Below are positions 9,626 to 63,232 of a DNA stretch of 64,000 bases, piece after piece. The position numbers and the translations under genes were made by a program. The first letter of the stretch is position 1; every line of letters starts with the position of its first letter. The stretch is from Octopus sinensis (Eukaryota), in NCBI RefSeq assembly GCF_006345805.1, contig NC_043000.1, positions 37,014,001-37,078,000 of the forward strand. Reading direction: 5' to 3'. The notes beneath the pieces were generated by a model. That model did no database searches. It was given only the letters and a program-made list of their open reading frames with translations, and was not told where the DNA came from.

Positions 9626-10274
9626 TATATGCATATGTGTGTGTGAGTGAGTGTGTGAGTGTGTGTGTGTGTGTGTGTGTGGTGAGCTTTTGGCTCCACC
9701 TAGTGTTTCCTCATCCAGTTTATTTCCGGTAAAGTGGAGCGGTTACTACCGTACTCAGTAGTGTTAATGGTTACGGTAAACAGAACAAATACGATGAAAA
9801 TAAAATAAAACAGGGTAAGCACAAGTTTATATCGTTTGTTCCCTAGGTAAGTTTTACTGTTGCAGAAGAAGATCCAAGTGTAATTGGATGATGAATGACA
9901 ACAGATGATCGGAGGAACTCTTTGTTGGATTATATTGCATAAATCAAATGCTTGAAGTTGGACAGATGGCAAGTATATATATATATATATATATATATAC
10001 TCTTATGTGTGTGTGGGCGCGCGCGCGCGTATATATGATATTTCTATGCACGCACATATGCGGCCAAATACACAGCTTGATATAAATACATTTTCACGTG
10101 CTCCATGGAATATTTAACGATTTCCGATATAAGACGTAATATATGCGTGAGTGCTTGCGCACGTGTATGTGTGCGCGCGCATGTATGTGTGTGTCGCGCA
10201 TTTATGTGTGCGCGTGTGTATTCACATACAATCACGTGTGTGTTTACGCGCATATGAGTATGTATGTATGTATC

Positions 10275-12048
10275 AGCATCATCATCATTGTTCGACCGTG
10301 GTCGAGACAATGGAATATCCCTGGAGATTACATCAGGGTAGGAGAGTGTGCGCCCTCTGGCATTGCGAGTAGATGGCTTCCAGAGGAGAAGAGTAGAAAT
10401 TACCTCTTTTTCAGCTCTACAACATTGTCCAGCAAACTGGGCTCTCTTACCTTTCACAAGAGATGACACAGGTGGTAGTTTCCCATATATTTGCATTTTG
10501 GTTGGATGGCGCTTCCACGAGAGATTTTGAGCTCTCATAAGGCGAGTGTAGGTTCCATCCAACCGCCTCTCAAGCTTCTTTGATAACGTCCAGGTTTCTG
10601 AGCCATATAGTAGAATTGGTTCGACTGTGGCTTTGAAGATTTCAAGTTTGAAGTCTCTACTTAGATTTGATGACCAGATCTTATGCATGTCATTACAGGC
10701 TGACCAGTTAGAAAGTCTTTTCCAGATGATGATATGTATGACCCAAGATATTTGTAATCAGAAACTATATTTAAGGGCGCATTGTTGAGAGTATGGATGA
10801 TGTAATCACTGTTGGACAAGCACTTGTTTATGTATTCAGTCTTGGCCTCATTGAGGTAAAGACCTACACAATTTGAGGCTTGTTCAAGAGATTGTAAAAG
10901 AGACTGGACATTGGAGAGAGAATCACTGATAAGAGCGATGTCGTCAGCAAAGTCAGTGTCTGTCAAGTACTCAGCTGCGTGTCTGGAACTTCTTCTTGGT
11001 TTTATTTCAAAGCCCTTGCCAGAGATGGTGTCAACTGACATACGCAGCACATAATCAACAACAATGATGAAAAGAAATGGAGCGAGTGTGTCTCCCTGCA
11101 GTATTCCGGCTTTGATTGAGAAAGATGATGTTTCTCCGTCAGGGGTTAAGATGGTTGAAGACGTATCTGTGTAGAGGACCTTGATGGCAGAAATGATTTT
11201 GTCTGGTATCCCATAGAGCTTAAGGATTTCAAACATCTTGTACCTATCTACAGAATCGAACGCTTTAGAAAAGTCTATAAATACCATTGCAAGATCGCGA
11301 TTAAATGCTTTTGATTCTTCAATAAGTCTGCGTAGGCATAGTATCTGGCTCAGCGTTGAGCGCCCATGTCTGAATCCATTTTGGTTCTTTCGGAGCAAAG
11401 GTTCAACAAAAAGGACAAGACGATTTAGGATCAGTTTGTTGTACAGTTTTTCAGCAATTGACATTAGAGATATACCCCTGTAGTTGGTGACGAGGGATAA
11501 ATCGCCTTTTTTGGGTATTAGGATGATTTGAGATTGGTGCCAAATCTTTGGAGCGACAAAGGTGGAAAGTGTGTGGTTGCAGAGGTTGAGCAAAAGTGTG
11601 TGAAATCTATCATCCTTCCAAATTATAGCTGGGATGTTGTCGGGACCAAATGCTTTCGAAGCTTTTAGTTCAAATATGGCAAAAGGGGAGGTGTTGATGT
11701 CCAGCGTGTCTGATATAGGCACACTTGGAAGAGTGGGGTTATCAGGGATTTTGGCATTCTTCCCAATGAAGTTTTTAAAATGGGTTGACCAATTTTCTAA
11801 ACGCTTCTTAGCTGATCCCCCTTTAATTCTAATTGATGACCCAGAATTTTTGCCTGATAGGTTTTTGATGGATTTCTAGGCGAGATGGTGTTTTTTACTA
11901 ATGTGCTCTTTGGATAGTTTACTAATTTTGCGTTCAAGTAAGCCTCATCAAGATTCTTCTTGGCAGCTATGAGTTGGATCTTCAGTGACTGGGATGGAGA
12001 ACGGTGGTAAGCTAGTGATATAGACTTTAGATGGTTTCTGGCTTCGAT
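10275..12048 (-). mobile_element. RTE-clade (RTE-X-like) LINE, 5'-truncated, with RT domain
   Basis: 353-aa frame with NYRGISL, FIDFSKAFDSV, GILQGDTLAPFLF, DFADD, YKYLG; after a frameshift LLYGSETW..LDGTYTRL..FAG; (TGA)n tail; (TATG)n on both flanks. Confidence 0.93.
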
Positions 12049-15686: not shown

Positions 15687-16035
15687 GCACTCCGTCGGTT
15701 ACGACGACGAGGGTTCCAGTTGATCCGACCAACGGAACAGACTACTCGTGGAATTAACATGCAAGTGGTTGAGCGCTCCACAGACCCGTGTACCCTTAAC
15801 AGTGTGTGACAAGGCTGGCCCTTTGAAATACAGGTACAACAGAAACAGGAAGAAAGAGTGAGAGAAAGTTGTGGTGAAAGAGTACAGCAGGGTTCGCCAC
15901 CACCACCCTGCCGGAGCCTCGTGGAGCTTTAGATGTTTTCGCTTAATAAGCAATCACAACGCCCGGTCTGGGAATCGAAACCGCGATCCTATAACCGCGA
16001 GTCTGCTGCCCTAACCAATGGGCCATTGCGCCTCC
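15687..16035 (-). mobile_element. SINE family C (tRNA-derived head GGAGGCGCAATGGCCCAGTGGTTAGGGCAGCGGACTCG)
   Basis: Reverse complement of 36525-36904. Confidence 0.9.
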
Positions 16036-23490: not shown

Positions 23491-23896
23491 TACTCTCTTT
23501 TACTCTTTTACTTGTTTCAGTCATTTGACTGCGGCCATGCTGGAGTACCGCCTTTAGTCGAGCAAATCGATCCCGGGACTTATTCGTTGTAAGCCCAGTA
23601 CTTATTCTATCGGTCGCTTTTGCCGAACCGCTAAGTGACGGGGACGTAAACACACTAGCATCGGTTGTCAAGCAATGCTAGGGGAACAAACACAGACACA
23701 CAAACATATACACACACATATATATATATATACATATATACGACAGGCTTCTTTCAGTTTCCGTCTACCAAATCCACTCACAAGGCTTTAGTCGGCCCGA
23801 GGCTATAGCAGAAGACATTTGCCCAAGATGCCACGCAGTGGGACTGAACCCGGAACCATGTGGTTGGTAAGCAAGCTATTTACCACACAGCCACTC
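23491..23896 (-). mobile_element. SINE family B, near full length
   Basis: Near-consensus; tail TACTCTCTTTTACTCTTTTA. Confidence 0.92.
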
Positions 23897-24794: not shown

Positions 24795-24958
24795 ACGACG
24801 GGCTTCTTTCAGTTTCCATCCACCAAATCCACTCACAAGGCTTAGGTCAGCTCTAGGCTATAGTAGAAGACACTTGCCCAAGGTGCCACGCAGTGGGACT
24901 GAACCCGGAACCATGTGGTTGGTAAGCAAGCTACTTACCATACAGCCACTCCTGCACC
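24795..24958 (-). mobile_element. SINE family B, 5' half
   Basis: Head and CORE-like segment present. Confidence 0.88.
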
Positions 24959-26078: not shown

Positions 26079-26400
26079 GGAGGCGCAATAGCCCTGTGTT
26101 TAGGGCAGCGGACTCGCAGTCGTAGAATTGCGGTTTCGATTACCATACCTGGCGTTGTGAGTGTTTATTGAGCGAAACAACTAAAGCTCCACGAGGCTCC
26201 GGCACTCTTTCACCACAACTTTCTCTCACTCTTTCTGTTGTACCTGTATTTCGAAAGGGCCAGCCTTGTCACACACTGTGTCACGTTGAATCTTCCCGAG
26301 AACTACGTTAATGGTACATGTGTCTGTGGAGTACTCAGCCACTTGCAGGTTAATTTCACGAGCAGGCTGGAACCCTCGTCGTCGTAACCGACGGAGTGCC
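26079..26400 (+). mobile_element. SINE family C
   Basis: tRNA-like head with A and B boxes; body ends CGTAACCGACGGAGTGCC; small internal deletion. Confidence 0.9.
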
Positions 26401-26967
26401 ACGATGAATTTACATAGTGAAGACCCATAACACTACGGAATGTTCACATACTTGACCTGTTATACTTAATACATCATGTTTTGTAAAAACTTACTTCAAC
26501 CACTTAAAATCTTTCTTCCATGAATATACTGTTGATACATACGTCATGATGGTAACAGAAAGTTGTTGATAATGTCGGGGAATGAAATAGCTTAGTATTT
26601 TGATGAATCCTGTTTTGAGTCTTATGTCTCATAGGGACAATTCTTCATTAATTTGGAAATACAATGTGTAAAATAAGCAACCTTAATCCTGGCGAGATTT
26701 GTAACTTTTTAACTGAATTTTGGTTAGAGTTGTATCAGGACCAGTGGCTTTCTTAGTTTTCAGTTCCTGCGATGTCTTCATAATGCCGTTTGCTTCCAAA
26801 ATTACATTCTGCAGTGTTGTAACAGAAGAGTTCTTACCAATTGTGGTTGGTCATTAGCATTTTGCAGATGTCATCTTTCTGTAAAGGCCTGCCAAAAGAA
26901 CACTGATATTTTTTATCTGATGTTTTCTCTGTATGTGTGTGTGTATGTGTGTGTATATGTATGTATG

Positions 26968-30828: not shown

Positions 30829-31233
30829 CGCAGGAGTGGCTGTGTGGTAAGTAGTTTGCTTACAAACCACATGGTTCCGGGTTCAGTCCCACTGCGTGGC
30901 ACCTTGGGCAAGTGTCTTCTTCTATAGCCTCGGGCCGACCAAAGCCTTGTGAGTGGATTTGGTAGACGGAAACTGAAAGAAGCCTGTCGTATATATGTAT
31001 ATATGTATGTGTGTGTTTGTGTGTCTGTGTTTGTCCCCCCAACATCGCTTGACAACCGATGGTGGTGTGTTTATGTCCCCGTAACTTAGCGGTTCGGCAA
31101 AAGAGACCGATAGAGTAAGTACTAGGCTTACAAAGAATAAGTCCTGGGGTTGATTTCCTCAACTAAAGGCGGTGCTCCAGCATGGCCGCAGTCAAATGAC
31201 TGAAACAAGTAAAAGAGTAAAAGAGAAAAGAGT
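30827..31233 (+). mobile_element. SINE family B, full length
   Basis: Head GGCGCAGGAGTGGCTGTGTGGTAAG, B box GGTTCAGTCCC, CORE-like ACCTTGGGCAAGT, internal microsatellite, (GTAAAAGA)n tail. Confidence 0.93.
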
Positions 31234-31325
31234 ATATGTATGTATGTATATATATATATATATATATACATACATATACATATATGAAGATGGAGAGACA
31301 TGTATATACACACACACATATATTC

Positions 31326-31560
31326 TTTGATCTTTTTACGTGTTTCAGTCATTTGAGTGTGGTCATGATGGAGCACCGCTTTTAGTCGAACAAATCTACC
31401 CCAGGACTTGTTCTTTGTAAGCCTATTCTTTATTCTATTGACCTCTTTTGCCGAACCGCTAAGTTACGGCGACGTAAACACACCAACATCAGTTGTCAAG
31501 CGATGGTGGTGGTGGTGGTGGTGGTGGGGACAAACACAGAAACACAAATACACACACACA

Positions 31561-36524: not shown

Positions 36525-36904
36525 GGAGGCGCAATGGCCCAGTGGTTAGGGCAGCGGACTCGCGGTCATAGGATCGCGGTTTCGATTCCCAGACCGGGCG
36601 TTGTGAGTGTTTATTGAGCGAAAACACCTAAAAAAGCTCCACGAGGCTCCGGCAGGGTATGGTGGTGATCCCTACTGTACTCTTTCACCACAACTTTCTC
36701 TCACTCTTACTTCCTGTTTCTGTTGTACTTGTATTCCAAAGGGCCGGCCTTGTCACTCTCTGTGTCACGCTGAATATCCCCGAGAACTACGTTAAGGGTA
36801 CACGTGTCTGTGGAGTGCTCAGCCACTTACACGTTAATTTCACGAGCAGGCTGTTCCGTTGATTCGGATCAACCGGAACCCTCGTCGTCGTAACCGACGG
36901 AGTT
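36525..36904 (+). mobile_element. SINE family C, full length
   Basis: A box TGGCCCAGTGG, B box GGTTTCGATTCC, complete body. Confidence 0.93.
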
Positions 36905-41149: not shown

Positions 41150-41202
41150 TATATATATATAAAGTGAAAGAATGGAGTCGAACGGCGATTTTTTACAAAA
41201 TT

Positions 41203-41290
41203 CCTTTATTCTCGACATATGTTTCGAAGACTGCATATTCTTAATTCCGAAGGAATAAAGGGTGCATTATGCCGCCTTCTCATCAGGAAA
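41203..41290 (-). ncRNA. Type-I hammerhead ribozyme motif (left arm)
   Basis: Exact reverse complement of the motif at 41415-41502; predicted cleavage after the C opposite G41214. Confidence 0.75.
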
Positions 41291-41414
41291 GACAAGGAAC
41301 CTATGTCAGCATCATGACGAACAAAAACTTTTAGATTACTTCCCACATGGAGTCCACAGTGGGAAGTCATCTAAAAGTTTTTGTTCGTCATGATGCTGAC
41401 ATAGGTTCCATGTC

Positions 41415-41502
41415 TTTCCTGATGAGAAGGCGGCATAATGCACCCTTTATTCCTTCGGAATTAAGAATATGCAGTCTTCGAAACATATGTCGAGAATAAA
41501 GG
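41415..41502 (+). ncRNA. Type-I hammerhead ribozyme motif (right arm)
   Basis: CTGATGA 41419-41425; stem II GAAGGC/GTCTTC; GAAAC 41480-41484; palindromic stem III ACATATGT; GTC cleavage triplet ending 41491; stem I TTTC/GAGA. Confidence 0.78.
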
Positions 41503-42289
41503 AATTTTGTTAAAATCGCCGTTCGACTCCATTCTTTCACTTATTTATAGTTAAAAAAAACACACAAATTTCCACACGAAAACACGTGATTTCTGCCCCT
41601 GGCATGTAGCTTCAACCGTGTTTTCTGACGTGAATTTGCTACCCGGGTATCGGTTAACCGAATTGTCCATACTAGGATAATTCATATGCGTGTGCGAGTG
41701 TGTAGGCATATCCAATGTTAATATATATATGTATGTGTGTCTGTTTACATTCGTTGTATTTTTGAAGCTACCAAGAATCAGCAGCGGCCGCAGCAGCAGC
41801 AGCTACCTGTCAATGACGTTTCTCCGTCTATTTAGATTTCCACTTAACAGATCTGACAAATCTTTCAACACATTTTCTCTCACGTGTGTTCCGTATTTAT
41901 TATGAGGACAATTCTTTTGTTTTAACACTTCATTCGGTAAATAACAATTTTATCCTTTGTCTTTTATTCTCATCTGTGGTTAAAATCTCTGCACCGTTTC
42001 TGCCTGTATTTACGTCTTCGGTATCAATAGCTTAAGTTCCAAAACTGGAGTAAATGCTGTAGCCTTTTGTAGTTGCCCTGGGATAGATGGTGTAGTCTTT
42101 TTTTTTCAATTGTGCTAGGGTACATGCCGTTGTCTCAATCATTGGCTGTCAGACTGACAAATACCAGCTATCTCCACACTCGAAAAAGTTTTTGGGAGAA
42201 TTTTTTACCTGTATATATGTAGGCATGTAAGGATATTTGCGTGAGTGTGTACGTGTGTGCCTATATGTATGTGCGTGTATATGTATGTC

Positions 42290-44645: not shown

Positions 44646-45126
44646 TATGTGCGTGGTTGTGTGTGTGTGTGCGTATGTATTTTCATGAAAAGTTTGCGAA
44701 ATGGTATATCCTCCATATTTTTCCCTCATCCCCGGCCCAATCCCTTTTTCATATTTTCATAGAATAGTGTCCTTAGAAATTACTACACAAGTATACAGGA
44801 CTTTGGCGCAGACTCTTCATTCGTCATATTTCTGCTCACTGATAACACAATTTCCTGTTATTATTATTATTATTCTGTTGTGTCTGAGGAGAGTCATTTT
44901 CTTTTTGTGCCTTATTATTTAACACACTCACCGGTAAAATTTCCACTTATTTCTTATTTTTATTTTCCTAAAATTTCGTTGGAAATAAGAAATAAGTGGA
45001 AATGTTATCAGTGAGTGTGTTAAATAATAAGGCACAAAAAGAAAATGACTCTCCCCAGACACAACAGAATATGCTTCAACACACGAACTCATATAAAGAA
45101 TCTTGCAAACCAAATCCGAAAACAAA

Positions 45127-49764: not shown

Positions 49765-51044
49765 TAATTTTTTTTTCTTCTTTCAAATTTCTTCCATTTC
49801 TTGCCGAGTGTCTTCCGACTCCAGGCAAAGAAAAGAAACTCATAGTATACATTGGTAGGCCATTAAACCAAACTCAATAGTTCGTTCATTTTTTTTTTTT
49901 TTTTTTAAAGTTAAATTAAAATACATGAGCAGCAACAGTTCTCACATCGACAATGCTCTTCTCAATACGTGTGATGTACCAGTTAAGACAATCTTTTGCA
50001 CTTCTTGCAGGGATGGTAAGCCAGGGATCATTCTCCTATAATTTTCGGTTCCCTTCTTGATCATTTCTAGTGCTCCTACGATCACTGGTATTGTAACCAC
50101 CTGAGATGCCACATTTTCTCAATTTCAATGAGTAGGTCTTTATATTTTCTGACCTGTCAAACTCTTTCGCTGAGATATTATGATCACAGGGGATGCTCAT
50201 GTCGATCAATAAGCAAACTTTATTGTTTTGGTCTTTCACAACAATATCTGGTTTATTGGCCTTGATGGTTCGGTCTGTATGTACTGGAAAGTTCCACAGA
50301 ATGGTTACATTTTCTCCTTCAGTTACAGCCTCAGGGTGGTGATTATACCACTTGTCGGCAGTTTTGATATTGTAATGCCGACTTATTAGCCAGTGGAGAT
50401 ATTGGCCAACTCTGTCATGTCTTAATTTATACTCCACTGGTGCTAAGACTTTACATCCAGAGATTAGGTGGTTCACTGTTTCAATCATGTCGTTGCAGAA
50501 TCGGCATTTTGGGTCTGCTCCATTTTTCATCACATTGGCCTGGTAGTTCCGGGTTAATAGGCTTTGATCTTGAGCAGCCAGGATGAAACCTTCGCTCTCT
50601 GCTTTTAGCCCTGAGCTCTGTAGCCACTGATGGGTTGCTTCTGGTCAAATCAGCTGGTGTTGCTGCGGGTCACATATTTGCCGTGCAGAGGTTTCTCCTC
50701 CACCTATCAGCCAATTGCTCGTGCGCTTTTTTCATTGCCATCATTTTCACCTTCTTTGCAACAATAGTGCCGTACTTCCTCGGGTTGTTCAGTTTGGGTA
50801 TCCTGCACGAGATCAATAGCAAATTTTTTGCTTTCCTTTATGATAGAATGAAGCTTCTTTCGTCTCTCGTGATTTTCCACGAGCTTTAGCATCCAGTCAT
50901 TCGATATTTCGAGATATTTGGCCAGTCCAATTGTGGTGTTTTGTAAGCTAGTTCAAATTGGATCAGGCCTCGACCTCCTTGGGCTCTGGGAATGTAAAGG
51001 CGATCTACGTCTGCCTTTGGGTGGTGCATCCTATTACAACTCAG
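49765..51044 (-). mobile_element. R4/Dong-like RLE LINE, 5'-truncated
   Basis: HHPKADVDRLYIPRAQGGRGL; CRFC..ETVNHLISGC..YKLRHD (CCHC knuckle); NKPDIVVKD..LIDMSIP (PD..D endonuclease); (AAT)n at both ends. Confidence 0.92.
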
Positions 51045-53700: not shown

Positions 53701-54149
53701 ACAATAAAGATAGCACGGATAAAAATACAAAATAACGTAAAAACAATCACAACAAAACCAGGACGTCAGGACAAGCGTCTTTCGACAGGACGAGGAGAGT
53801 ATAGGCTGGCTGTGGAATAAGTGCCTGAATACATAGATGCATACACACATACATACATGCATACATACATACATATACATACATACATACAAACACACAC
53901 ACACACACATACATATATACACACACACACACATACATACACACATACATACATACATACATACATACACACACACACAACACACACACACACATACATA
54001 TCCGATGTGAACAAACAAGTTTGTTTTGGAAGCGTTGAAATGTATTGTGGAACAAGTAAAAAGATAAATTTTAATCAACGCGTAGATACTGAAGTGTATA
54101 TATATAAAGGATCAAATCCCCTTCTTCTTTAAAAGCAGAAAAATTTGTC

Positions 54150-54223
54150 GCCATTTAAGCCTAAATGGTAGAGCATTCTAACCGGATATTGAAAAGGTGT
54201 GAGTTCGATCCTCATGGCTGGCT
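54150..54223 (+). pseudogene. tRNA-like sequence (pseudogene or SINE head), anticodon not assignable
   Basis: Acceptor GCCATTT/GGCTGGC (6 of 7 pairs counting G-U); D arm ending GGTAGAGC; T arm GTGAG-TTCGATC-CTCAT; 8-nt anticodon loop ACCGGATA; T8 run at 54232-54239. Confidence 0.65.
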
Positions 54224-54258
54224 GCCGACAATTTTTTTTCTGCTTTTAAAGAAGAGGA

Positions 54259-54652
54259 GGATCTTTTCGGTTTGAACGGCAGTTTTTTCTAGCGGTGTCA
54301 TATGAAATTGTCACCCATAATTATGACCCTAGTATCTGTTTTAGGGTTAGGGTTAGGGGGGGTATCTTTTTTGCTTCAGAAATGTAAATAAACCCAATCT
54401 GTTTCTTAAACGAGGGACATATTCATACGGCACAGAATGTTTTTTTTACCTCAATAGACGTCACTGATTGATTGAAATTGTAGAAATTGAAGAAAAAACA
54501 ACAACAAATATCTTACAAACCATAGAATTTTCTCAATAAAACCAAGAGAAAAAGATGTTTTATAAACACATTCTACCAGTATACGAAGTTTAAAAGTGTT
54601 TAGTTACGTGGAAATTATTTTTTAAAAACTGCTGTTCAAACCGAAAAGATCC
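54259..54652. mobile_element. 394-bp MITE with 29-bp TIRs and internal (TTAGGG)3
   Basis: GGATCTTTTCGGTTTGAACGGCAGTTTTT / AAAAACTGCTGTTCAAACCGAAAAGATCC (1 mismatch); GA on both flanks; TTAGGG x3 at 54341-54358. Confidence 0.9.
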
Positions 54653-55567
54653 GAATAGGATTTTATCCTTTATACATATACTGTTCAGTATCTACGCGTT
54701 GGTTAAAATTTATCTTTCTACATGTTCCACAATACATATATTCATATATAAAGTTCGCTTTCCATGTTTTTGTTTTTCATGTTCTCGTTTCTCATTTTGT
54801 TGACGTTTTTTTTTTAAAATCCTGTACCCATATATGCATGTATATATACATATATATGTAGGTATGTACATATGCAAATATACATACCGGTTGAACTCTC
54901 CGTCCCCGCTTCCTATAGCCCCTAATTAATAGACTAGTGTTACATATTAGTTTTCATAGCTTCCTGCAATCGTTTTAGGCCTTTAGATTTCTTATAAAAG
55001 TTTTAACGAGGCAATTGTCTTTGCTTCAGATTTGTTTCCTTTCATGATATATAGAAACTTTACTAAACCGCACTGTTTCTAGCGTATTTCTTACCAATAG
55101 TATTTGTATTTTAGATGTTGTATGCCTATTTGGTTAAGAAGTTCGTTTTGAATCTGCGAAGTCCTGGCTCTGTAACTACAGCATAGCATCTTCTCAAATG
55201 CAATTTTTTATTACCTCAAACACATATATGACATGTGAGTAAAATAGAGTAAACAGAAATTCTACAGAAGTCCATCAAATGGATTGTATCCCTAATTCAA
55301 AGCACCAGCCTCGATACGATGCTATCGCCTGTGAAGGACCTTAAGGATACACATATCTATGGATTACCCAGCCACTGGCACACCAATTCGAGGAGTCTGG
55401 ATGTTCAGTTGCTTCAACGAGGGAATATTTATATATATATATATACGTATAAATTTGTTCTTTGTAATACTAACTTTTTGTTACGGTTACAATCATTTAT
55501 ATTTAGAATTATTTTGTATAAATGGCGGTGCCCCAGCATGGCCACAGCTCGTCAGCTGAAACTAGAT

Positions 55568-55615
<48 letters not shown>

Positions 55616-55616
<1 letters not shown>

Positions 55617-55832
55617 TTCTTTACTACCCACAAGGGGCTAAACATAGAGTGGACAACAAAGACAGACAAACGGATTAAGTCGATTACATCGACCCCAGTG
55701 CGTAATTGGTACTTATATTATATACTATATATATATATATATATATATACCTTCGGGGTCGATAAATTAAGTACCAATTACGCACTGGGGTCGATGTAAT
55801 CGACTTAATCCGTTTGTCTGTCCTTGTTTGTC
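55616..55832. mobile_element. Inverted pair of SINE-A 3' halves around (TA)n
   Basis: 55661-55715 and 55768-55822 are exact 55-bp reverse complements. Confidence 0.9.
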
Positions 55833-55892: not shown

Positions 55893-56245
55893 GGAGGCAC
55901 AATGGCCCAGTGGTTAGGGCAGCGGACTCGCGGTCGTAGGATCGCGGTTTCGATTCCCAGACTAGGTATTGTGAGTGTTTATTGAGCGAAAACACCTAAA
56001 GGCTCCTTAGGCTCCGGCAGGGGGTAGTGGCGAATCTTGCTGTACTCTTTCACCACCACTTCTCTCACTCTTTCTTCCTGTTTCTGTTGTACCTCTATTT
56101 TAAAGAGCCAGCCTTGTCACACTCAGGGTCATGCCGAATCTCCCCCAGAACTACATTCGGGGTACACGTGTCTGCGAAGTGCTCAGACACTTGCACGTTA
56201 ATTTCATGAGCAGCTGGAACCCTCTCGTCGCAACCGACGGAGCGC
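55893..56245 (+). mobile_element. SINE family C
   Basis: Collinear with 36525-36904. Confidence 0.9.
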
Positions 56246-61907: not shown

Positions 61908-63232
61908 TATATATGTATATGTATATGTTTGTGTGTGTATGAGTGAGAGAGAGAGGGGGTGTCAATATGATGGTATGTAGGTGTCGATGAAAATAAACTT
62001 TAGAGAATATTTATGTTTCCAGTGTTCTGTTCTTGTCTGTAAAATGTACATGGAAAATTCACAGCACATTTTGATGTACCAGTTGCTGCTATAATATTTA
62101 TGGGTTCACACAGAAATATCAGTTCGAGAATCTGAGCATCCGTCTACTGCAGTCGGTTGGAAATATGTGCATACAGTCGCTAGAATTTCAGGCCTCACCG
62201 ACTTGGAGAATCCTATTTGCATACGTAACGCATTGCTGGCAACCAATTCAATACAGAAGTTACTGGCACGTGAAGCAATAAGATGCTGAAGAGTAATTCC
62301 AAGTGTTTAATCTACACTTGTGTGTAAATTAATGTGAAATATATACGCTGTTCAATTATACGCAGCTATGTTTCTTTTTTTACAATCTCTTCATAGACAG
62401 AGAAATAGAATAGGTAGGAGAGTTTTCAGTTGCACATCTATAATTGATATATGGGTACGGGTGTCTGCAAGTGAGCACCTATCATGTCAGTATATATGTA
62501 TATATATATATATATATATCATTTCTCTATCACATACTCACACATACATATATACTCTTCTCTTGAGATACATCATATATATATATATGTATATATGCAT
62601 ATATATATATATATAATATATATAATATATATGTACCAAAATAAACAACAGGATATCCAGGGGTAATACAGTACGATCGTTTCAAGCGACTCCATTTAAT
62701 TGAACAATGCAACCATTACATCAATTTAAATGCAAAGCAATCCTCAGCTGCATAAATACATAGAATTAAGATATAATATACATGCATGAAATGTGTATAT
62801 ACATGTAAGCATGTGCTTCTTTATGTTTACATTTATATGTGTGCGTAAATGTATATGGTTTATTTCATGCGTATATTTTATGTCAAAGTAATTGGTGACA
62901 CTCCACTCGTGCGCATGAAAGGCATAGCAGATATTATATATATGTGTGTGTGTGTGTGTGTGTATTCCTCTCGTTCTGGTCTAACGACCCTCCATATTTG
63001 TTTTCGTTCGATGTCGTTGTATATTTCCACTGTCATTCTCTTTTTTATTCCCAACTTTGACACTCCATAAATCCTAAATTTATTCTAGAATTTATGGGAG
63101 CAACTGTGTTTGAAGACTCATATTGTCCTTCAATGCTCGTTTGTTTACGTATTTCATGTTATTTGCACCGTTGGTGACATCCTGTACCCATATATGCATA
63201 TATATATATATATTCATTTACATAAATTTATG

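Follow-up and report, generated by a model that had tools for sequence, protein, structure and literature searches.

An inverted repeat interrupted by a MITE

The window, by which we mean the whole 64-kb stretch of Octopus sinensis DNA that was analyzed, is eukaryotic, has a G+C content of approximately 38%, and is extremely rich in microsatellites. At positions 54040 to 54737 it contains a fold-back structure made up of a left arm, a degenerate tRNA-like sequence that forms the hairpin loop, a short trailer with a T-run, and a right arm split in two by a nested MITE.

The arms were detected in a repeat search and by blastn as two sets of paired segments. One set, the outer arms, pairs 85 nt at 54040-54124 with 54653-54737 at 89% complementarity (blastn E=5e-27); the other, the inner arms, pairs 28 nt at 54116-54143 with 54235-54262 at 93%. 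We then aligned the arms globally after deletion of the MITE and of one copy of its TSD. In this restored unit, the left arm at 54040-54149 (110 nt) is 92.5% complementary to a right arm of 109 nt, which consists of an inner segment at 54227-54258, defined by the repeat search and the alignment, and an outer segment at 54661-54737, defined by the repeat search, blastn, and the alignment; no strand is assigned to any of these segments. Of 107 aligned positions, 99 match and 8 are mismatched, and there are two indels, one 2 nt long and the other 3 nt. The imperfect inverted repeat described in the original prediction is real. The left arm reads as a reverse-complement copy of the 3' trailer of the tRNA-like unit, its T-run, and some 100 bp of downstream flank. 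The restored unit of 296 nt folds into one hairpin of approximately 110 bp, with a dG of -151.5 kcal/mol and a z score of -20 relative to shuffles.

We compared the flanks of the structure in a shuffle test and found no significant TSD at its outer ends, 54040 and 54737. The best flanking direct repeat matches at 9 of 11 positions, lies 12 to 13 nt off the arm ends, and was equalled in 89 of 1,000 shuffles (8.9%). At the arm ends, only a palindromic AT or TA can be read as a TSD, and it is indistinguishable from the repeat itself. No significant extension of the repeat was found past 54040 or 54737. The structure as a whole has terminal inverted repeats, of 110 and 109 nt, but lacks the TSD of a MITE or a foldback transposon. 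The ORFs within the fold-back do not exceed 55 aa, and three longer ones that overlap the left arm run through an ATAC microsatellite. No RT or GIY-YIG ORF was found in the fold-back, and Rfam returned no hammerhead match in region 53900-54900 up to E=10.

The nested element is a non-coding MITE of 394 bp at 54259-54652, with no assigned strand, the ORFs of which are at most 36 aa long. Its TIRs (54259-54287 and 54624-54652) are 29 nt long and 97% complementary. It is flanked by an 8-bp TSD, the left copy of which, GAAGAGGA (54251-54258), matches the right copy, GAATAGGA (54653-54660, read from the sequence), at 7 of 8 positions; neither copy has an assigned strand. The target is present once in the left arm, in reverse complement, as GAAGAAGGGGA, so that the left arm represents a paralogous empty site. 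The element thus has the TIRs, the TSD, and the empty site that define a MITE insertion. A TSD of this length is compatible with the hAT, P, or Merlin types. The MITE also contains three perfect telomere-type repeats, (TTAGGG)3, at 54341-54358, followed by GGGG.

Because the left arm holds the MITE target once, as an empty site, the fold-back predates the MITE. The original prediction had placed a 394-bp MITE in one arm and had proposed that the fold-back came first and the MITE later; both statements were borne out, and the 8-bp TSD is added to them.

A degenerate tRNA-like sequence forms the loop

The loop at 54150-54223, on the plus strand, is a degenerate tRNA-like sequence that resembles a pseudo-tRNA or the head of a SINE. 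The Rfam tRNA model RF00005 matches it end to end, but the score, 24.1 bits, falls short of the gathering cutoff of 29 bits. Corrected for all 4227 Rfam families, the E-value is 0.0023 when 111 nt are searched and 0.021 when 1 kb is searched; for the tRNA family alone, the match is far past chance, even at the scale of the window. ARAGORN did not call the sequence with default settings. With the threshold set at 80%, it called the identical 74 nt together with an obviously false candidate beside it, in the AT-rich arm.

In the cloverleaf, 18 of 21 pairs are formed, and there is one mismatch in each of the acceptor, D, and anticodon stems. An A occupies position 8, and U33 is absent. An aberrant anticodon loop of 8 nt had been reported, which corresponds to one possible register (ACCGGATA), but in the relaxed fold of ARAGORN the loop has 7 nt and the stem is mismatched. 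An A-box-like motif, AAGCCTAAATGG, and a B box, AGTTCGATCC, are found at tRNA spacing, which together with the RF00005 match supports the earlier description of the spacer as a 74-nt cloverleaf-like sequence with A- and B-box motifs. Folded alone, the tRNA-like sequence is no more stable than shuffles (z = -0.87). By eye, it shows resemblances to the Arg, Asn, and Cys tRNAs. No exact matches to the called ORFs that span it were found in the protein collection searched. We rejected a functional tRNA gene on the basis of the sub-threshold RF00005 score, the negative result of ARAGORN at default settings, A8, the absence of U33, and the enlarged anticodon loop. The loop is derived from a tRNA but does not encode a working one.

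A Pol III-terminator-like segment follows on the plus strand at 54224-54239. It consists of the 3' trailer GCCGACAA and a T8 run at 54232-54239, and it overlaps the right arm, whose inner end begins at 54227. As had been noted before, the T8 run lies 8 nt downstream of the end of the tRNA-like sequence at 54223, where the terminator of a tRNA gene would be expected. The copy of this segment in the left arm has T5 in place of T8.

Repeats elsewhere in the window

Degenerate LINE fragments lie on the minus strand at 10044-11722 and 50036-50533; they contain an RVT_1 domain (E=3.7e-32) and show a weak match to zf-RVT. Their nearest protein relatives share at most 83% aa identity and are found exclusively on ENA and JGI metagenome contigs; no copy of the fold-back element was found in the DNA of the contigs that hold the LINE RT homologues. 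At least two abundant families of tRNA-derived SINEs are represented by several copies, at 55893-56213, 36525-36849, 15804-16035, and 26079-26405 and also at 30830-30990, ~24905-24948, ~23850-23893, and ~833-876. They resemble octopus SINEs. SINE families other than the fold-back unit have approximately 4 to 10 copies each within the 64 kb.

Long hairpins are common in the window, which contains two palindromic MITE-like elements and several inverted SINE pairs. The first palindromic element (~41173-41533) has 157-nt arms that are 98% complementary around a 12-nt spacer, and the second (44871-45071) has 89-nt arms, 96% complementary, around a 23-nt spacer. Neither is related in sequence to the fold-back at 54040-54737. 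A motif of the form GAACGGC..TTTTT is common to the first of them and to the TIR of the nested MITE, a weak resemblance. Segments of a multi-copy SINE form tail-to-tail inverted pairs at 55610-55832 and 31036-31512, both centered on (TA)n microsatellites, and inverted repeat pairs in this genome seem to be joined preferentially at (TA)n tracts.

The right-hand flank of the fold-back contains a 20-mer (54820-54839) that, according to the original prediction, recurs exactly at 63180 and marks a dispersed family. The exact copy is there. It is part of an exact repeat of approximately 22 nt (ATCCTGTACCCATATATGCAT; 54819-54840 and 63179-63200) that adjoins a (TA)n run at both sites and for which 0.01 occurrences are expected by chance. 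A dispersed family does not follow from it, since only these ~22 nt and the (TA)n run are shared and the other flank is unrelated, with no wider homology. The region 54820-54890 matches dozens of TA/CA microsatellites, and the recurrence of the 20-mer has no bearing on the fold-back. Microsatellites also account for more than 200 sub-threshold Rfam "miRNA" matches (mir-297, mir-466, mir-1277, and others) obtained for the whole window in E-value mode: all of them fall on TG/TA/CA tracts, and we discarded them as artifacts. In gathering mode, Rfam gave 0 hits in the whole window.

We searched the window for a second copy of the arms, the tRNA-like head, or the MITE with blastn (word size 9) and nhmmer, using the head, the restored unit, and the MITE as queries, and found none. 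This result bears on both origins that had been proposed for the structure. One was a tRNA-headed retroelement with an inverted 5' duplication as in Penelope-like elements. We found no RT or GIY-YIG ORF, no hammerhead, no significant outer TSD, and no second copy in the 64 kb, and this origin is not upheld. The other was a fold-back element that had captured a Pol III unit, for which a significant outer TSD and a second copy in the 64 kb are likewise absent; it is not upheld either.

The second proposal can be put more generally as a mobile fold-back or MITE-like family, whose TIRs enclose a tRNA-derived Pol III promoter unit and in which a DNA transposase acts on the arm ends. The 110-nt arms and the small, non-coding unit are in keeping with such a family, as are the palindromic MITE-like elements of the same window, and the capture of tRNA-like sequences by non-SINE elements is known from the Helenus TRIMs (PMC10886601). 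Nevertheless, other copies are absent from the 64 kb, no TSD is recognizable at 54040 and 54737, where the best candidate repeat lies off the arm ends and is readily equalled by shuffles, and the only relative that we found elsewhere, described below, has no arms. We regard a mobile family as rather unlikely; it may itself have begun with a fold-back event of the kind that we propose below.

A relative of the tRNA-like unit without the arms

When metagenomes were scanned with a 20-mer taken from the D arm and the anticodon arm, one relative was found, on JGI contig L003. The tRNA-like unit of L003 scores 23.8 bits with RF00005, has the same anticodon-arm sequence as the window unit and an enlarged, 9-nt loop, and is followed 6 nt downstream by a T6 run. 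Its cloverleaf has 19 of 21 pairs. The acceptor and T stems differ from those of the window unit yet pair, and three pairs are changed on both sides relative to that unit. The flanks of the L003 unit are unrelated to the window arms, and L003 and the window have nothing else in common. Because these flanks are unrelated, the homologous unit comprises the tRNA-like sequence, the trailer, and the T-run and occurs elsewhere without the arms. The T-run lies on the right arm in the window and just downstream of the unit in L003, where the flanks are unrelated. The unit therefore extends no farther than its T-run; the right arm is the original, ordinary flanking sequence, and it is the left arm that was copied.

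On either side of the L003 unit there is an exact copy of a 13-nt direct repeat, ATACCTGTTTCAC, one at 820 and the other at 1040 (region 798-1052), which could be a TSD or the result of a local rearrangement. A weak inverted repeat of 22 nt (798-819 and 1005-1026) also surrounds it. A match in a GTDB genome was rejected as a chance 18-mer within a bacterial coding region, with no tRNA context, and scans of IMG/VR with the head, the arm, and the MITE TIR gave no matches.

The two units might be taken for a selected RNA gene, encoding either a tRNA-like RNA with an enlarged anticodon loop that is kept in more than one organism or a read-through hairpin precursor of small RNAs. Their common D-arm and anticodon-arm sequences, the acceptor and T stems that differ and still pair, with three pairs changed on both sides, and the high stability of the hairpin would fit such a gene. 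We nonetheless consider it very improbable: there are two sequences only, both under the tRNA threshold, and the tRNA-like sequence folds no better than shuffles when taken alone, while the arms have drifted by 7.5%, with indels, and the MITE breaks one of them.

Origin of the inverted repeat

The positions at which the arms stop relative to the tRNA-like sequence are informative as to how the structure arose. The left arm ends at 54149, 1 nt before position 1 of the tRNA-like sequence (54150, on which Infernal and ARAGORN agree), and the right arm starts at 54227, 3 nt past its discriminator base. The arm ends leave no space for a TSD around the tRNA-like sequence, which excludes its insertion into an older palindrome. 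That possibility belongs to a wider class of coincidences, in which two opposed copies of an unrecognized repeat happen to flank a tRNA pseudogene, or a tRNA-like retrocopy happens to sit in the center of an older palindrome. The inverted SINE pairs of the window offer a precedent for the former. However, both arms stop within 4 nt of the ends of the tRNA-like sequence, it is very unlikely that two truncations would have arisen independently at mirror-image points, and the arm sequence is not repeated within the window. Of the explanations discussed here, coincidence is the one to which we attach the least credence.

The explanation that we tentatively prefer, while putting it at somewhat less than an even chance, is a one-off fold-back duplication seeded on a tRNA-derived relic and later interrupted by an unrelated MITE. 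The starting unit (54150-54239) would have been a decayed Pol III-type, tRNA-derived unit, consisting of the cloverleaf relic, the 8-nt trailer, and the T-run. The trailer, the T-run, and approximately 100 bp of 3' flank would have been copied once, in reverse complement, onto the 5' side of the unit through an intra-strand template switch, or fold-back, of a growing or resected DNA 3' end. In this event, a strand ending in ...AAATGGC-3', the complement of the tRNA-like 5' end, would have annealed to the acceptor-3'/trailer region of the same strand, where the complement of TGCC (54223-26) lies. Copying would have proceeded outward along the same strand for about 110 nt before the end returned to the original template. 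The product would have been a stem of approximately 110 bp with a 77-nt loop formed by the tRNA-like sequence. The arms would then have diverged by approximately 7.5%, and the 394-bp MITE would later have entered the right arm, generating its 8-bp TSD.

The observed junction, at which TTGTC is joined to GCCATTT, is the exact outcome of priming on TGCC, and the TGGC/TGCC microhomology amounts to 3 of 4 nt. As expected of a template switch, the arm ends lie at most 4 nt from the ends of the acceptor stem, microhomology is present, the loop is single copy in the 64 kb, and there is no TSD. The occurrence of arms and head just once in the 64 kb, where other SINE families recur approximately 4 to 10 times, is also in favor of a one-off event. 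Template switching is known to form new hairpins, or to lengthen existing ones, starting from short seed repeats; examples are template-switch hairpins (Monttinen & Loytynoja, PMC8794818; PMC10710096; PMC5453318) and the expansion of inverted repeats in yeast promoters (PMC13100816).

Several points weigh against the fold-back duplication. Our search of the source genome spans 64 kb, so a low-copy family would escape it, and the two other near-perfect palindromic MITE-like elements in the window make a mobile fold-back more likely a priori. The TGGC/TGCC microhomology extends to only 3 of 4 nt, and priming by the acceptor stem proper predicts 4 nt beyond those observed. Most of the template-switch events on record involve fewer than 110 nt. 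Lastly, a DNA-level event and an RT-level event cannot be separated by sequence.

The RT-level counterpart would be a SINE whose cDNA snapped back on itself. Its head would be 54150-54223, its body of approximately 110 nt the right arm, and its tail the TA-rich sequence ATATTCATATATA at 54738-54750. First-strand cDNA would prime itself on the acceptor-stem complement at integration, which would add a second, inverted body on the 5' side of the head, a scheme near to the inverted 5' duplication of the original prediction. The geometry of the junction would be identical to that of the DNA-level model, the TA-rich sequence past 54737 resembles the tails of other SINEs in the window, and tRNA-derived SINEs and LINE RT fragments abound in the genome. 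The T-run is the main obstacle. The T8 run, T5 in the left-arm copy, separates the head from the supposed body and would bring Pol III to a stop there, which disfavors a Pol III SINE transcript spanning the arm. Furthermore, the body has no relative in the window, the TSD is not significant, and L003 has the head and the T-run but not the body. Thus, the structure has the head with A and B boxes of a tRNA-derived SINE but neither a terminator-free head-body unit nor a flanking TSD. A snap-back of this type is in our opinion distinctly unlikely, and we favor an event at the DNA level because the T-run splits the head from a body that has no relatives, because the TSD is not significant, and because L003 shares the head and the terminator only.

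The anatomy of the locus, the positions of its junctions, and the order of events can be read directly from the DNA. From these, we infer that the mechanism was a fold-back and that it took place at the level of DNA. A one-off fold-back duplication accounts for the identical anatomy without any mobility. The rearrangement is real and probably one-off, a new mobile element is not established, and the locus is probably a single-copy, non-mobile, and inert relic.

Comparison with known systems

Palindrome formation seeded by short inverted repeats is a related process. As in template-switch hairpins, a short prior inverted repeat, here the acceptor stem and trailer, would have seeded reverse-complement copying of the neighboring sequence, and the result would be a long stem, perfect at first, that encloses a single-copy loop, without TSD or mobility. 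In contrast with those hairpins, the arms of approximately 110 nt are at the long end, and the seed is a tRNA-like cloverleaf; moreover, the event is deduced here from its product.

The locus has in common with tRNA-derived SINEs and tRNA pseudogenes an A-box-like motif and a B box, a sub-threshold cloverleaf, a degenerate anticodon arm, and its location in a SINE-crowded genome. It differs from tRNA-derived SINEs in that a T-run directly follows the tRNA-like sequence, and in that a shared body, a clear tail, a TSD, and a second copy in the 64 kb are all absent. Its small size, its lack of coding capacity, and its long inverted arms are shared with foldback elements and with palindromic MITEs, among them the two of the window. 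Unlike the palindromic MITEs of the window, with their spacers of 12 to 23 nt, it has a 77-nt tRNA-like loop and arms of 92.5% complementarity, and unlike foldback elements and palindromic MITEs in general it has no TSD, and no second copy was found in the 64 kb. Our literature search yielded no MITE or foldback element with a tRNA-like core.

Penelope-like elements occur with inverted 5' partial copies, and the present structure similarly has an inverted duplication on the 5' side of a unit. Unlike in Penelope-like elements, an RT or GIY-YIG ORF and a hammerhead are absent, and the duplication involves the sequence that flanks a 74-nt tRNA-like unit on its 3' side. The TRIMp3 elements Helenus, Ajax, and Cassandra are non-SINE carriers of a Pol III promoter derived from a small RNA (PMC10886601). 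They too have a non-functional tRNA-like sequence embedded in a non-SINE repeat architecture. However, in TRIMp3 elements this sequence is located in the direct LTRs of multi-copy retrotransposons with TSDs, whereas here it is located between inverted arms, in one copy in 64 kb.

Significance

On the most economical reading, the fold-back locus is a neat specimen and not a new kind of element. There is some small chance that it might be more than that: the arm-tRNA-like-arm structure could belong to a mobile fold-back family with a tRNA-derived Pol III promoter in its loop, or could have founded one, or the tRNA-like unit of the window and the unrelated contig L003, with its enlarged anticodon loop and its compensated acceptor and T stems, could represent a conserved family of small-RNA genes. 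The locus would matter more if the unit were mobile: Pol III promoter capture, as known from SINEs and TRIMs, would then take in inverted-repeat elements as well, and a true mobile family would be the inverted-repeat counterpart of SINEs and TRIMp3 elements. If the fold-back duplication was a one-off event, as we prefer to think, the locus illustrates the template-switch origin of long hairpins, which is unsurprising. It would then be a natural example of a short structured seed, the acceptor stem of a tRNA, nucleating a 110-bp hairpin, for which the later MITE insertion provides a built-in time stamp.
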